NCBI GenBank assembly: GCA_965644295.1
Contig: CBFFRP010000640.1
Coordinates: 1 to 6,972 of the forward strand
DNA from: Paraphysomonas bandaiensis
Lineage: Eukaryota > Protista > Chrysophyceae
DNA: 6,972 nucleotides
Reading direction: 5' to 3'
Shown here: positions 106 through 6,972 of the stretch, piece after piece
Layout of the letters: the number at the start of each line of letters is the position of its first letter
Numbering within the stretch: position 1 is the first letter of the stretch
Position numbers and translations under genes: made by a program
The notes under the pieces: generated by a model
Databases searched by the model: none
Told to the model about the DNA's origin: nothing
Seen by the model: only the letters and a program-made list of their open reading frames with translations

Positions 106-566
106 TTAAAAACTGTTGGCGTCTTCATATGCCTTCTGCACGTCGTCCTTGTTGAGGACCCACCCGCACTTGCCATTGCGACACACCACTTGCCGCAGAC
201 CACAGGTCGTGGCTATGTTGTATCCCTCTCTTTTCTCCAGTAACTCCCTAATGGTTTCATATGCCAGTCTGCTGCCCTCGGTGGAGGCATCGATCTGCTT
301 CAGCATCTCAGTAGGGTCCTCTGCATCCACCACACTATCCAGTTTCTCTTCCGTAATCTCCTCTATCTTATCTGGCATGTTGACCAGAGAGAGCGCCTTA
401 TCCACATAGCGCTTGTGGACATCCAGGTCAGTGCCCAAAGCCTCAATCACACCTGGTAGAGGGATGCCCCCCACTAATGACAGGGCGAGCTTCAGGAGCA
501 CTAGACCGAGCTTCAGCACAGGACCGGCTTTTATTAGCCACTCCCGATAGACTTTGATAGGGTAGC
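106..566 (-). CDS. Terminal exon: second half of the C-terminal domain
   Basis: Acceptor ctgtaaag|GC TAC CCT (phase 1) joins donor AAA G|gtgatg at 706/705 to give CGPNGKG-YPIKVYREWLIKAGPVLKLGLVLLKLAL...AYETIRELL...GLRQVVCRNGKCGWV...ANSF*. It extends track ORF 106..519. The intron is 567-705 (139 nt). Confidence 0.88.
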
Positions 567-3500
567 CTTTACAGCACAGAGTTCAGACACATGTGTAATA
601 TGTAACATGTCACACAGACAAACACGTATGTAATAACGTATATATGTATATATATATAACCAGCACCAACAAGCATGCACATGTATATATTATAGTCCTC
701 ATCACCTTTTCCATTTGGCCCACAAGGGGCGATGCCGCGGGTGTGGCTGCAGAGGAAGAAGAGGGTGTACTTCTGAGTGAAAACTCGAGTTACCCCTCTG
801 CGCAGATATCCCGTCATCGATTGATCTTTGATTTCAGGAAGGACAATCATGAGGGTGGGGATGGTGTGAGTGCCTCTCAACAACTGTGCGAGGCTATTGT
901 GTAGAGAGTCCATTTGTGCAGAGAGTGCATCCAGGGCACCTACTAACGACGGGTTTCCCTGCATATCTCTCATCGCATCGGTCAATTGGATAATGCTTTG
1001 TTGAGTCGCCTCCGCCCGAGCTGCATCCTCAGCTTGCATTCTCGAGCGCTTATCTTCAAATTGCTCAATTTTCTGCTGAAATTGATTGTTGTTCGCAATC
1101 ACCGACTGAATGGACTCCGCCCACTGCTCATGTAGGGAAGACAGTCGCTCTATCACATCATGTCGCAAGAACTTATTCTCCCTTTGAACGTGATGAAGTG
1201 TCTCTTGGTCTTTGCGATGGGCTCGAGTGAATCCTAGATCCGCAATCTGGTCCACCACCTCAGCAGCCGTGGGTCTCTCGGCAGGGTTGAAACTGCACAT
1301 TGCAAATACCATGTCGACGTAGCCCCTGTTGATGCCTTTCATCTTGGCTGCGAGTAAACCTCTCAGGTATGTTTCATCGGATGAAAGTGCTCTAGTTAAG
1401 AGCGCCTCCTCTTGCCATGGGAGCACATCCTGCCGTCGTGGGTCGGTTTTATTCAGCAGTGCCGCCACCAGCAGCCCGGCAGTAAATATATCAATGGCAG
1501 GGTCGGCTACGAGCAAACCTGGACTGCCGTTATAAACATCGGGACTCACCCATGGCTGAGAGAATATCAGCTTAGGGGGGGTGCTGTCATCGCAGCGACA
1601 CAGCTCTGGCCCATCAAGGTCATTCACACAGCGAAACCTTCTAGAACAATCCAAATCACAGAATTTCAATTGGTTGCCTCCGATCAACACATTAGCAGGT
1701 TTGAGGTCCAGGTGGCATAAACCACATGCATGCAATTCCTTTAAGGCCAAAACCAACTGATTCACCCAGTCGTACTTTGCCCAGGCGTAGTCTTGGTCTA
1801 TTACGACGCGTAAATCAAACTCGAGGCGCTCCATTACAATATACTGGCAAAGTCCCTCTCCACAACCCCCGTACACATGCACACACCCTGTGGCTGTTCC
1901 TGCTTTCAACAGCAGGGCAAAGTTTTGCAACTCCCGCTGCAAGTCTCGTTGTCGTCCATTGGTTTTGATGATGACTTCATGTTTCTCGAATTGACCGTAT
2001 AAGTTTTTATGGACGAAGTTACCAGAGAACATGCCATCCAGAAGGTTACCAATACACACTCCTCTCCTTGCTGATGTCGCAGTCAATGGCTGTATATTCT
2101 CAATAATTTCACCCGACGACACACGATAAAGGGAGGTAGGAGAGGATACCGGAGAGGGCGGAGACAGGGGGGGAGGGCAAAGCTCTTTTAAGCCCGTCAT
2201 GAGTCGGACACGGACAGCCAAGTTCGTTATGCCCATCACTTTAAGCTCGCTACCATTATTCTCCATCAAATATTTAGCACTATCCCCAATGATGGCCATG
2301 CTATCAAAGTGTGCTTCTGTCAATTTGTCGAACACCGACTTGGCGTCAATGCTTGTGCCTACAAGTGATCACAGCAGTATTATATGTTACTTCTTGTATA
2401 CATAATATAACTGCACATATATATACACCTGCCTATAATAGTACATATAATATATGTGTGCAAAAATACTATGAGTAACGACATCAGAATAAGGGAGTTG
2501 ATGCTGTAGTCATACCGGCAAATATTTTCCGCAGCCATATGAACACCTCGTTCGAATGCAGCTTCTGTGGCACATATAGAAGCTTGAGCACATATATAAG
2601 TGGGTGCTACTCACCTTAACAGCTGTGCCAACTATACACATACATATATGGTCGCCGTCAAGGGCACACAAACATATCATACCATAGAACCACATCATCA
2701 TCACACACATACCTCTGCAGCAGCAGCTTCCTCCTCCTCTTGCTGCCTCCGTCTCTGTCTCTCAGCCTATACAATACACACAAACTCAATTAAAACGAAA
2801 ACACACTCGACACCTATATAATACATCAACCATACCAATATATCAAACATATCATACCATATAACTACATCATCATCACACACATACCTCTGCAGCAGCT
2901 TCCTCCTCCTCTTGCTGTCTCCGTCTCTGTCTCTCAGCCTATACAATACACACAACCTCAATTAAAACCAAAACATACTCGACACCCATATCATACACCA
3001 ACCATACCAATATATCAAACATCATACCATAGAACTACTTCACCATCACACACATACCTCTGCAGCAGGTTCCTCCTCCTCTTGCTGTCTCCGTCTCTGT
3101 CTCTCAGCCTATACAATACACACAACCTCAATTAAAACCAAAACATACTCGACACCCATATCATACACCAACCATACCAATATATCAAACATCATACCAT
3201 AGAACCACATCATCACACACATACCTCTGCAGCAGCTTCCTCCTCCTCTTGCTGCCTCCGTCTCTGTCTCTCAGCCTATACAATACACACAACCTCAATT
3301 AAAACCAAAACATACTCGACACCCATATCATACACCAACCATACCAATATATCAAACATCATACCATAGAACTACTTCACCATCACACACATACCTCTGC
3401 AGCAGCTTCCTCCTCCTCTTGCTGCCTCCGTCTCTCAGCCTATACAATACACACAACCTCAATTAAAACCAAACCACACTCGACACCCATATCATACACC

Positions 3501-6128
3501 AACCATACCAATATATCAAACATATCATACCATATAACCACATCACCATCACATACATACCTCTGCAGCAGCTTCCTTCTCCTCTTGCTGTCTCCGTCTC
3601 TGTCTCTCAGCCTATACAATGCACATATGGTCCAATGAGGTCATCTCTCTGGTTCTACGAACCAGATGAAACAAGCATACAGCACGCATACTAACATGTG
3701 CCCTTCTGATGACATTACGCGTCTCATCATCTTCTGCCACATCAACAGGAGTGTATCCATCCTGCAAAATAATAAGCATCATAAAGAAGCGGCACTGTGC
3801 ATCGTCGCATATTCATATCTAGATACCGTCTTCACACAATGAGTCAGTGAAGTACATATAGCCCTCTTAGCACTGTATATGTATGTATATCACTGTATAT
3901 GTATGTATATCACTGTATATGTATGTATATCACTGTGTATGTATGTATATCACTGTATATGTATGTATATCACTGTATATGCATGTATAGGGGGGTTACT
4001 TACATTGTCTCTTATAGTGATATCTGCTCCTTTGCTGATGAGATATTCACATGTATCTCTGTGACCTTCATAGGCAGCCTTGTGAAGAGCTGTAGAACCA
4101 TCCTATAAAACAACAACAATGACATCACATGAGTCTCTTAGCACTGTATATGCATGTATAACACTGTATATGTATGTATATCACTGATATGTAAGTATAT
4201 CACTGTATATGTATGTATGAATGTATGTATATCACTGTATATGTATGTATATCACTGTATATGTATGTATATCACTGTATATGTATAGGGGGGTTACTTA
4301 CATCGTCTCTTATAGTGATATCTGCTCCTTTGCTGATGAGATATTCACATGTATCTCTGTGACCTTCATAGGCAGCATTGTGGAGAGCTGTAGAACCATC
4401 CTATAAAACAACAACAATGACATCACATGAGCCCTCTTAGCACTGTATATGCATGTATATCACTGTATATGCATGTATATCACTGTATATGCATGTATAT
4501 CACTGTATATGTATGTATATCACTGTATATGTATGTATATCACTGTATATGTATATGTATGTATAGGGGGGTTACTTACTTTGGTTCTTATAGTGATATC
4601 TGCTCCTTTGCTGATGAGATATTCACATGTATCTCTGTGACCTTCATAGGCAGCATCGTGAAGAGCTGTAGAACCATACTATAAAACAACAACAATAACA
4701 TCACATGTGCCCTCTCAGTACTGTATATGCATGCATATCACTGTATATGTATGTATGTATAGGGGGGTTACTTACATCGTCTCTTATAGTGATATCTGCT
4801 CCTTCGCTGATGAGATATTCACATGTATCTCTGTGACCTTCATAGGCAGCATTGTGGAGAGCTGTAGAACCATCCTATAAAACAACAACAATGACATCAC
4901 ATGAGCCCTCTTAGCACTGTATATGCATGTATATCACTGTATATGCATGTATATCACTGTATATGTATGTATATCACTGTATATGTGTATGTATGTATAG
5001 GGGGGTTACTTACTTTGGTTCTTATAGTGATATCTGCTCCTTTGCTGATGAGATATTCACATGTATCTCTGTGACCTTCATAGGCAGTGTGGGCTTGCAT
5101 ACATATGTGTATGTGTGCAAAGCAATACTCAAGTACAGAAGTACAAAATAATGATTATTATCGTATAATGAATCATGAATAATACTGTCTACAATATCAA
5201 CGACTAATAATACTGTCTACAATATCAACGGCTATTTCTAATCCCAACAACAATCACATTCCCTACAGTTTGTATTCCTAACTACATGGTACACGTATAC
5301 AATACAGTACTGTACTACTAATCATATAATACAGGACATGTACACGTATATATTCTATATGTAAGTGGATAGTCCTACAGCAGCATTGTGGAGAGCTGTA
5401 GAACCATCCTATAAAACAACAACAATGACATCACATGAGTCTCTTAGCACTGTATATGCATGTATATCACTGTATATGCATGTATATCACTGTATATGCA
5501 TGTATATCACTGTATATGTATGTATATCACTGTATATGCATGTATGTATGTATGTATATCACTGTATATGTATATGTATGTATATGGGGGTTACTTACAT
5601 TGTTTCTTATAGTGATATCTGCTCCTTTGCTGATGAGATATTCACATGTATCTCTGTGACCTTCAGAGGCAGCCTTGTGAAGAGCTGTCCAACCAACCTA
5701 TAAAACAACAATAACATCACATGAGCCCTCTTAGCACTGTATATGTATGTATGTATGTATGTATATCACTGTATATGTATATGTATGTATATGGGGGTTA
5801 CTTACATTGTTTCTTATAGTGATATCTGCTCCTTTGCTGATGAGATATTCACATGTATCTCTGTGACCATTATAGGCAGCATAGTGAAGAGCTGTAGAAC
5901 CATACTATAAAACAACAACAATAACATCACATGAGCCCTCTCAGTACTGTATATGTATGTATATCACTGTATATGTATGTATGTATGTATGTATATCACT
6001 GTATATGCATGTATAGGGGGGTTACTTACATTGTTTCTTATAGTGATATCTGCTCCTTTGCTGATGAGATATTCACATGTATCTCTGTGACCTTCAGAGG
6101 CAGCCTTGTGAAGAGCTGTCCAACCAAC
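106..6128 (-). CDS. Multi-exon ankyrin-repeat / charged-helix / SAM / Ser-Thr kinase / coiled-coil / C-terminal-domain protein (5'-partial, ~1070 aa in window)
   Basis: Exons reconstructed by hand, all with GT..AG introns and compatible phases. Transcript order: 6030-6128, 5806-5904, 5599-5697, [5014-5087+5384-5408 interrupted], 4776-4874, 4580-4678, 4302-4400, 4004-4102 (ankyrin); 3696-3761 (cap); 3561-3611, 3395-3439, 3225-3275, 3058-3108, 2888-2938, 2713-2766 (helix units); [2615-2631 microexon uncertain]; 2516-2564, 706-2358, 106-566 (TAA at 106-108). Skipping the two bracketed exons gives an uninterrupted frame. No start codon lies in the window. Confidence 0.85.
706..2358 (-). CDS. Large exon: SAM C-terminal part, Pro/Ser linker, protein kinase domain (~1241-2113), coiled coil (~875-1228), start of C-terminal domain
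   Basis: Core of track ORF 569..2335. Kinase motifs are VIIK, RE (alphaC), YIVME, HLDLKPANVLI, KFCDLD, WVSPD, DIFTAG and PAERPTA. Acceptor cacttgtag|GC ACA at 2358 is phase 1. Confidence 0.92.
2180..2564 (-). other. SAM (sterile alpha motif)-like domain split by intron 2359-2515
   Basis: Exon 2516-2564 (KLHSNEVFIWLRKIFA G|gtatga) splices to TSIDAKSVFDKLTEAHFDSM...ELKVMGITNLAVRVRLMTGLKEL. This fits the SAM pattern eV..WL ... eLk.mGI....R.rl...l. Confidence 0.7.
2615..2631 (-). other. Candidate 17-nt microexon (TTGGCACAGCTGTTAAG)
   Basis: Flanked by gtgtatag and a consensus donor gtgagt, but its phase conflicts with the upstream phase-0 donor. Confidence 0.5.
2670..3620 (-). repeat. Tandem array of six exon+intron units (~166-175 bp); each exon encodes one E/R/Q/A-rich helix unit
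   Basis: Exons in transcript order: 3561-3611 AERQRRRQQEEKEAAAE; 3395-3439 AERRRQQEEEEAAAE; 3225-3275 AERQRRRQQEEEEAAAE; 3058-3108 AERQRRRQQEEEEPAAE; 2888-2938 AERQRRRQQEEEEAAAE; 2713-2766 AERQRRRQQEEEEAAAAE. All are bounded by ttgtatag|GCT and GAG|gtatgt, and the length variants (45, 51, 54) are multiples of 3. Confidence 0.92.
3696..3761 (-). CDS. Ankyrin C-terminal capping exon (DGYTPVDVAEDDETRNVIRRAH)
   Basis: ttttgcag|GAT ... CAT|gttagt, 66 nt, phase 0/0. The GxTP..vA motif is typical of a terminal partial ankyrin repeat. Confidence 0.85.
3871..3990. repeat. Intronic 20-bp minisatellite CACTGTATATG(T/C)ATGTATAT; variable copy number in every ankyrin intron up to ~6232
   Basis: About six copies here and about 2-6 copies in the other introns, often with extra GTAT units. 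It accounts for most intron length variation and for the spurious MYVYHCIC ORFs. Confidence 0.95.
5088..5379. mobile_element. 292-bp non-coding insertion, probable solo LTR (or small non-autonomous element), in an ankyrin exon
   Basis: Begins TGTGGG and ends CCTACA (TG..CA, short imperfect inverted ends). It is flanked by a GCAG duplication (5084-5087, 5380-5383). Removing it plus one GCAG restores an exact 99-nt exon. AT-rich, with an internal 25-bp direct repeat (5178-5202, 5206-5230). Confidence 0.85.
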
Positions 6129-6232
6129 CTATAAAACAACAATAACATCACATGAGCCCTCTTAGCACTGTATATGTATGTATATCACTGTATATGTATG
6201 TATATCACTGTATATGTATGTATATCACTGTA

Positions 6233-6533
6233 TGTATGCGAAGGAGAATACAGCGCAGTAGATAGGAAGTGTTCTTTTCAGTTTAGTACTTGAAGTGACT
6301 GTATAAGATACGCATAGGGTACATAGGAGTGTATGGTGTAATATTATGCAGTGTTTTGTGTACGGCTGTAGACTAGAGGCATAATTTCCTCTTAATGATA
6401 AGTTCTGTAGTAACTATAAAGAGATCCTTGCTTTGACTACCTGTAGCGTAGACTGTGTAAAAAGGCAACGGGGGTATTCCGTCCGTATACGATTAGCAAC
6501 GTCCGTTAACAACCAGACCGAGTACCGCATACT
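6233..6533 (+). repeat. Putative 5' LTR (~301 bp)
   Basis: Terminal inverted repeat GTATGCG (6234-6240) / CGCATAC (6526-6532), so the ends read TG..CT rather than TG..CA. An alternative right end is TTAACA at 6511. Confidence 0.5.
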
Positions 6534-6562
6534 TTCTCTACGTAAGAGGAAATTAGGAAAAT

Positions 6563-6972
6563 ATGAAGAAAAATGGGACCGAAAAACCCAAGAGGTTTGC
6601 AAGATATCCATCGCAATCAACCAGAGATACATCAGAATCAGTGCCGAAGTTGCGATATGGCGCAAACAGCAACCTGGCGACGTTCAAGCAGAAGATGGTA
6701 GTGGCAGCTATGGAGAAGTACGGAAACCTTGCAAGACTGTTGGAACTCGACGAGTATTATGAGCCTGATCCAATCGAATTGAGTGATTACGATAAAAGAA
6801 CAGATCCGCTTGGCATACAGCTCGATCGAATGAAGAATAAGATCAAGACCAGGGATAGGCTGATATCTGAGATGGAAAACAACAGAACGCCATTCTACGG
6901 ATATATGCTCAGACATTTAAGCAACGAGTCTTTGGATGCAATCAAACTGTTAGACGAATACGAGCAAATACG
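6563..6972 (+). CDS. Gag-like polyprotein N-terminus (3'-partial, 136 aa visible; absent from the ORF track)
   Basis: MKKNGTEKPKRFARYPSQSTRDTSESVPKLRYGANSNLATFKQKMVVAAMEKYGNLARLLELDEYYEPDPIELSDYDKRTDPLGIQLDRMKNKIKTRDRLISEMENNRTPFYGYMLRHLSNESLDAIKLLDEYEQI. Intronless and stop-free to the edge. The vPkL....N...fK..m ... Y..m...LS.ES...IK pattern resembles copia-type Gag (recognised from memory, not searched). Confidence 0.65.
   Translation, partial: MKKNGTEKPKRFARYPSQSTRDTSESVPKLRYGANSNLATFKQKMVVAAMEKYGNLARLLELDEYYEPDPIELSDYDKRTDPLGIQLDRMKNKIKTRDRLISEMENNRTPFYGYMLRHLSNESLDAIKLLDEYEQI

Follow-up and report, generated by a model that had tools for sequence, protein, structure and literature searches.

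The window analysed here is the entire contig CBFFRP010000640.1 (C640; 6972 b), which belongs to a 62.6-Mb eukaryotic assembly of Paraphysomonas bandaiensis. Its minus strand carries the 3′ ~6 kb of a gene that joins an ankyrin-repeat array, charged helices, a SAM-like piece, a divergent protein kinase, a helical or coiled-coil stretch and a C-terminal tail. The source is a marine flagellate. We find the architecture to be real; the protein family that has it is undescribed and varies a design principle already known. The gene is a member of a young, unstable multigene family and is itself a damaged copy of a fast-evolving gene. With moderate confidence, we read the family as having a receptor-like design, most plausibly for the recognition of non-self, with the window's own copy probably non-functional.

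Exon chain and domains

Seventeen exons, with GT donors and AG acceptors throughout, are linked in compatible phases into a single open frame of 1074 codons that terminates at a TAA at 108-106 (Table 1). In order, these are seven intact 99-nt ankyrin exons, a 66-nt exon for the C-terminal cap, six exons of 45-54 nt for the charged helices, and then three exons of 49, 1653 and 461 nt, the 461-nt one being the last. Every ankyrin repeat and every charged-helix unit is encoded by one phase-0 exon of its own. The junction into the last exon is spanned by uninterrupted homologues. An initial annotation, made from the DNA letters, had proposed this single-frame splice path and order of domains, and both stand; as it remarked, no named family has this combination. 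The candidate exon of 17 nt at 2631-2615 was dropped from the model because it is incompatible with the SAM frame. Pfam and other searches were run exon by exon, and the exons were concatenated solely to count codons and stops.

The ankyrin identity of the head (PF00023) follows from a Pfam Ank match to one 99-nt exon (E=9.6e-11) and from the seven intact 33-aa units with their cap. The charged-helix units are 15-18 aa long, of AERQRRRQQEEEEAAAE type, and their composition fits that of an ER/K single alpha-helix, in which runs of E and R/K alternate. Their six exons lie in a 170-bp tandem repeat (TRF period 170, 5.6 copies, 93%). Both classes of exon had been recognised at the outset. For the SAM domain annotated next to them, a SAM-like piece is present, probably a SAM domain, and SAM-type clusters score 0.84-0.85 with it in the Atlas, but the profile score is below threshold. 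SAM_2 reaches 14.4 bits where the cut-off is 20.5 (E=0.043, profile positions 23-65), with the first 16 aa, which lie in the preceding exon, not included.

The kinase in the large exon matches Pkinase (PF00069) at 62.2 bits against a curated cut-off of 31.7 (E=6.7e-17). Its catalytic loop, HLDLKPAN, aligns to HRDLKPAN of MAPK6 and holds the HxD..K..N pattern, while DLD replaces DFG and supplies the metal-binding Asp. No Arg directly precedes the catalytic Asp (HLD), which bears out the earlier assignment as a non-RD kinase. A candidate beta3 Lys (VIIK) and a candidate alphaC Glu (LQRELQ) were spotted by eye in the translation, and a GxGxxG motif is absent. The domain is very divergent, with its best PDB match (E=4e-6) covering the catalytic loop only. 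The exons give no Pfam match to a NACHT or NB-ARC NTPase and so do not place the protein among NLR/STAND receptors.

Table 1. Features of the window, listed in the direction of the minus strand.
Feature	Position	Strand	Evidence
Dispersed LTR-retrotransposon (long terminal repeat) sequence in place of the gene's 5′ end; not gene	6236..6972	.	at least 45 genome copies
Ankyrin cassette exon 1 of window, 99 nt, phase 0	6030..6128	-	Pfam Ank 9.6e-11; GT-AG sites; no upstream exon within window
Ankyrin cassette exon 2	5806..5904	-	exon with GT-AG sites
Ankyrin cassette exon 3; protein identical to exon 1	5599..5697	-	exon with GT-AG sites
Broken ankyrin exon, halves 5408-5374 and 5098-5014	5014..5408	-	solo LTR between halves
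Ankyrin cassette exon	4776..4874	-	exon with GT-AG sites
Ankyrin cassette exon	4580..4678	-	exon with GT-AG sites
Ankyrin cassette exon	4302..4400	-	exon with GT-AG sites
Ankyrin cassette exon, last full repeat	4004..4102	-	exon with GT-AG sites
C-terminal ankyrin cap exon, 22 aa	3696..3761	-	conserved in paralogues C483, C124, C241, C71, C438
Six charged-helix cassette exons (3611-3561, 3439-3395, 3275-3225, 3108-3058, 2938-2888, 2766-2713)	2713..3611	-	TRF period 170; exons with GT-AG sites
Small exon: start of SAM-like domain, ends phase 1	2516..2564	-	identical in C483 and C124; splice sites
Large exon: rest of SAM-like domain, Pro-rich linker, non-RD kinase, helical/coiled-coil stretch, first three tail strands	706..2358	-	
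Last exon: remainder of unnamed C-terminal tail domain and stop TAA	106..566	-	alignment with P0001 and C348 paralogue

The tail domain and its kinase partner

The tail is a conserved, unnamed alpha/beta domain. AlphaFold2 models of it (pLDDT 81 and 83) predict three strands, then a hydrophobic helix of 24 residues and a Pro-rich turn; a variable loop surrounded by helices comes next, and a beta-hairpin and one more helix close the domain. The part encoded by the last exon comprises the hydrophobic helix, the variable loop and the beta-hairpin with its invariant Trp. Conservation falls chiefly on Pro, Gly, Phe and Trp, together with two Cys.

A word search with the large exon returned only P0001, a 641-aa metagenome protein made of kinase, short helix and tail, and this single relative is attributed to the length window of the search. 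A profile built from four tail pieces matches the large exon at 704-1045 and finds 309 cluster representatives at E<=0.001, 99 of them at E<=1e-10. The sources are chrysophyte transcriptomes, marine metagenomes and a Chlamydomonas species. The tail is widespread, mostly in company with a kinase. Among 60 long matches, the partners are Pkinase (46), ankyrin (5), Ras (5, including 3 Roc and 1 COR-A) and TIR (1), and RING and Deltex-C also occur in long tail-bearing proteins. The kinases linked to the tail are non-RD in 31 of 37 cases, mostly with DLD or DFD. The combination of kinase, helix and tail is an old module of microbial eukaryotes, to which ankyrin, TIR or Ras/Roc heads are attached elsewhere.

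Other descriptions of the tail were sought. The initial annotation had called it ROCO-like, and this identity is rejected: no Roc, Ras or COR profile matches any exon or any of 46 tail sequences, and the Roc-then-COR order of a ROCO protein is not found. Roc and Ras domains are confined to a few distant tail-bearing proteins. Pfam gives nothing recurrent for the last exon, the P0001 tail, P0014 or all 46 members of A3, and PDB searches with the tail, by single sequence and by profile, return coiled-coil noise only. In the ESM Atlas, every score for the tail is below 0.8. With the whole tail model, Foldseek has no match and the VIA match is limited to the leading helix; with a domain-only model, the best VIA match has a Z of 5.2 over a helical hairpin, Foldseek has none below E=0.1, and the viral library has none. 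In these searches, the tail is without a relative by Pfam, PDB sequence, solved fold or viral fold, and a new fold is not claimed.

Within the genome, the tail domain is found at only five loci: C640, C483, C124, C365 and C348. The C348 locus is an intact, intronless gene for a SAM-like piece, kinase, helices and tail, without ankyrins, and it is the sole intact tail-bearing gene in the genome. Tara Oceans metagenome contigs carry the tail exon at 99-100% identity.

Gene copies, damage and the variable head

Two paralogous copies, C483 and C124, share their 3′ half with C640 at 98-100% identity, and their introns are as alike as their exons. The numbers of cassettes differ among the copies. 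Ankyrin and helix units number 7+1 (the broken repeat) and 6 in C640, 7 and 1 in C483, and 5 and 10 in C124, and the length of the putative charged-helix spacer varies with them (1, 6 and 10 units). C483 and C124 may be alleles of one locus, since their flanking sequences run collinear at 94-98%. A further copy, C365, is older and degenerate, with the same domain order and many stops.

The C640 copy is probably defective as assembled, and may not make the protein because its start exon is absent and one of its ankyrin exons is broken. No start exon is found within the window, since LTR-retrotransposon sequence occupies its expected place. Contig C374 overlaps the window exactly over 5399-6972 and from its position 1575 onward runs into copia-like pol open reading frames (ORFs). 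No further ankyrin or start exon is found on C374 beyond the window, only transposon ORFs and a V-ATPase gene. Between the halves of the broken ankyrin exon lies a solo LTR of ~275 bp (about 5373-5099) with TG..CA ends and a 4-bp duplication, CTGC. At least 40 copies of this element occur in the genome at 97-99% identity, and it was recently active, as its LTRs are near-identical and many are paired 5.24 kb apart. Omission of the broken exon keeps the frame because all cassettes are in phase 0.

The other copies carry lesions of their own. C483 is also without a start exon and has multi-copy elements upstream. The array of C124 is directly preceded by an ATG exon for an N-cap, but its tail exon has lost 9 bp relative to C640 and C483, which puts a TAA in frame just ahead of the tail's hydrophobic helix. 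A start exon and two cassettes are also present on the 5-kb contig C639.

The ankyrin head is variable in a restricted manner. When 87 cassettes drawn from five contigs are compared, entropy is limited to codons 1, 3, 8, 11, 12, 32 and 33, with minor variation at codons 23, 24, 28 and 31, and the framework is invariant. Pairwise pN/pS is 4.6 at the seven variable codons and 0.7 elsewhere in the cassette, a crude contrast because the codons were picked with the data already in view and because recombination occurs between cassettes. The variable positions cluster on the predicted binding face of the ankyrin array, in agreement with the proposal of a variable sensor. The variable codons correspond to the positions randomised in designed ankyrin repeat proteins (DARPins). 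Both have an invariant framework and vary at the same surface positions, in the beta-turn and first helix; the cassettes are natural, genomic, exon-encoded and varied by evolution, whereas DARPins are varied by library design.

The same head of N-cap, cassettes, cap and helix is also joined to other outputs: a RING finger (C241), another, Cys-rich-ended kinase (C138), and a PARP domain (C71).

Several further observations concern the arrays and their surroundings. Every intron of the window's ankyrin array (3871-6233) holds a 20-bp minisatellite of CAGTGATATACATACATATA type in 2 to 8 copies, and the cassette period varies from ~196 to 298 bp as the minisatellite copy number varies. On contig C526 (2801-22800), ~75 ankyrin cassettes make up two oppositely oriented arrays; one end has a start exon, and the 20 kb that were read show no domain downstream of the cassettes. 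On C461, shortly past three ankyrin exons and a long TATC-type simple repeat, a MULE transposase domain (3.7e-8) and a HECT ubiquitin-ligase domain (6.2e-8) are fused in one open frame of 982 aa (2694-5639). The C483 ankyrin array is immediately preceded (1-1153) by an AT-rich multi-copy element, present in at least 12 copies at 81-89%; its small ORFs of 84 and 111 aa each follow a TTAAAAAATTAATATATA-like motif, and Pfam gives no match to it. The element may represent an insertion of viral or virophage-like type.

The V-ATPase A exon on C374 is 89% identical to that of Mallomonas annulata, 87% to Dinobryon divergens and ~80% to diatoms, identities that place the genome in the chrysophyte lineage. 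Entries of the V-ATPase A cluster (P0179) at 90% identity or more bear the names Ectocarpus fasciculatus, Symbiodinium microadriaticum, Mesodinium pulex and 'Mallomonas marina' MMETSP1167, which suggests that the flagellate contaminates public assemblies. The cluster of 100%-identical V-ATPase A includes sequences labelled as unrelated cultures, in keeping with a common contaminant.

Known relatives in design and competing explanations

The closest known analogue is the exon-per-repeat candidate receptors of brown algae. These are the LRR-ROCO and NB-ARC-TPR candidate pathogen receptors of Ectocarpus (Zambounis et al. 2012, PMC3341825), with later work on the ROCO genes (PMC11378527). They and the C640 family both occur in stramenopiles and give each ligand-binding repeat an exon of its own. 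In both, exons are shuffled, copy number changes, genes arise and die rapidly and the repeats show diversifying selection, and both are candidate receptors. Unlike the Ectocarpus genes, the C640 family uses ankyrin instead of LRR or TPR and has no Roc-COR and no NB-ARC. Its output is a SAM-like piece, a non-RD kinase and the unnamed tail, and a second cassette, the charged helix, sets the length of the spacer.

The kinase and its arrangement resemble other systems in part. Neither the C640 kinase nor the non-RD kinases of innate immunity have an Arg before the catalytic Asp, and in both the kinase is linked with a variable recognition domain and with predicted oligomerisation modules. Such kinases, which Dardick and Ronald are said to have described in 2006, reportedly include the IRAK and RIPK types and plant receptor kinases. 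In contrast to these, the C640 protein has no death domain, TIR or LRR, and its very divergent kinase has DLD for DFG. Ankyrin arrays and protein kinases also share a polypeptide in the animal ankyrin-repeat kinases RIPK4/ANKK1, ILK, TNNI3K and DAPK1. However, those have fixed, conserved repeats without exon-cassette hypervariability, other domain orders, and no SAM, ER/K helix or tail, and no sequence relationship to the C640 protein was found beyond the Pkinase fold.

The C640 family has the features of an exon-per-repeat candidate receptor: symmetric one-repeat exons, repeat numbers of 5, 7 and 7+1, and an amino-acid excess on the binding face, as measured by the crude pN/pS. Further traits of receptor families are swapped outputs, pseudogenes and transposon damage, and a non-RD kinase. 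The interpretation offered at the start, a candidate intracellular immune receptor, is partly supported, and by analogy an immune role is plausible.

Several competing explanations bear on this reading. One is that the ankyrin/helix part and the SAM-kinase-tail part after it are separate genes. A gene of the latter kind, without ankyrins, does exist at C348, but the frame is continuous from helix to SAM in the window: the last helix exon is not followed by a stop, nor is the SAM-like fold preceded by a Met. The intron between the two is the same 148 nt in C640, C483 and C124, the order is retained in C365, and the only start codon found is ahead of the ankyrin array, in the N-cap exon of C124. 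In addition, a transcriptome-derived protein of the chrysophyte Pedospumella (Spumella) elongata (P0015, 1168 residues) has ~12 ankyrin repeats, the kinase and the tail in one transcript. A single gene is favoured on these indirect grounds, and two genes are very improbable. A more serious competitor, with a real chance that we put somewhat short of even, is a dead gene fragment: a relic of recent segmental duplication and transposon activity, with no copy making the full protein now. The missing start exons of C640 and C483, the solo LTR, the premature TAA of C124 and the stops of C365 are as such a relic would have them, as are the near-neutral divergence between the copies and the lack of an ankyrin head on the only intact tail-bearing gene. 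Against it, two copies have exons of 550 and 152 codons without any interruption, splicing past the broken exon would leave the frame intact, and contigs of the Tara metagenomes carry the tail exon almost unchanged. The missing 5′ ends may be assembly breaks, because contigs end inside repeats; C639 breaks off after its two cassettes.

Alternatively, the protein would be a working signalling kinase without a role in defence, its ankyrins a scaffold for cytoskeletal, phagocytic or membrane-traffic partners and its variability a by-product of unequal crossing-over in a satellite-like array of exons and introns. Satellite-like arrays, such as the inverted ones of C526, and the minisatellites of the introns agree with this, and so do the animal ankyrin-kinase fusions ILK, RIPK4 and TNNI3K, which are not known to be sensors. 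Neutral turnover of arrays, however, fails to explain an amino-acid excess limited to binding-face codons within a nearly invariant framework, and it fails equally to explain the presence of one head on RING, PARP and kinase outputs. We regard this explanation as unlikely.

The reading as a receptor-like family for non-self recognition has its own weaknesses. All three near-identical copies are lesioned as assembled. Divergence between the copies does not demonstrate purifying selection, as the dN/dS of ~0.7 comes from just 14 codon differences and is uninformative. The pN/pS contrast suffers from its choice of codons after the fact, and the SAM match is sub-threshold. The Gly-rich loop of the kinase is degenerate, and the kinase could be inactive, its activity not being assured with no GxGxxG loop. 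Few polar residues are conserved in the tail. No transcript of the C640 gene or its subfamily was found, and the closest full-length protein, P0015, is without the SAM and helix parts.

A receptor of this design would work through each of its parts. The ankyrin face would bind a variable protein ligand, and the ER/K-type helix would serve as a stiff spacer of variable length. The SAM-like piece and coiled coil may gather kinases for trans-activation, and the tail, which travels with this type of kinase, would dock the complex or be a regulated output. A bolder version, which we consider quite improbable, is that the non-RD kinase, coiled coil and tail form an unrecognised protist signalling unit for immunity or cell death. 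The tail would then be a new fold whose buried hydrophobic helix is released onto membranes on activation, and its interchangeable heads, hypervariable ankyrin here and TIR or Roc elsewhere, would be directed against giant viruses or parasites of chrysophytes.

Little is known of how free-living protists recognise viruses and parasites. Receptor designs built from exon cassettes have until now been described for brown-algal LRR and TPR genes; the locus adds an ankyrin version, with one ankyrin head wired to kinase, RING and PARP outputs. What the present analysis adds is the kinase-tail module and its unnamed domain. The tail accompanies a distinctive non-RD kinase (HGD...DLD) in hundreds of protist proteins, and defining it would annotate the whole family at once.

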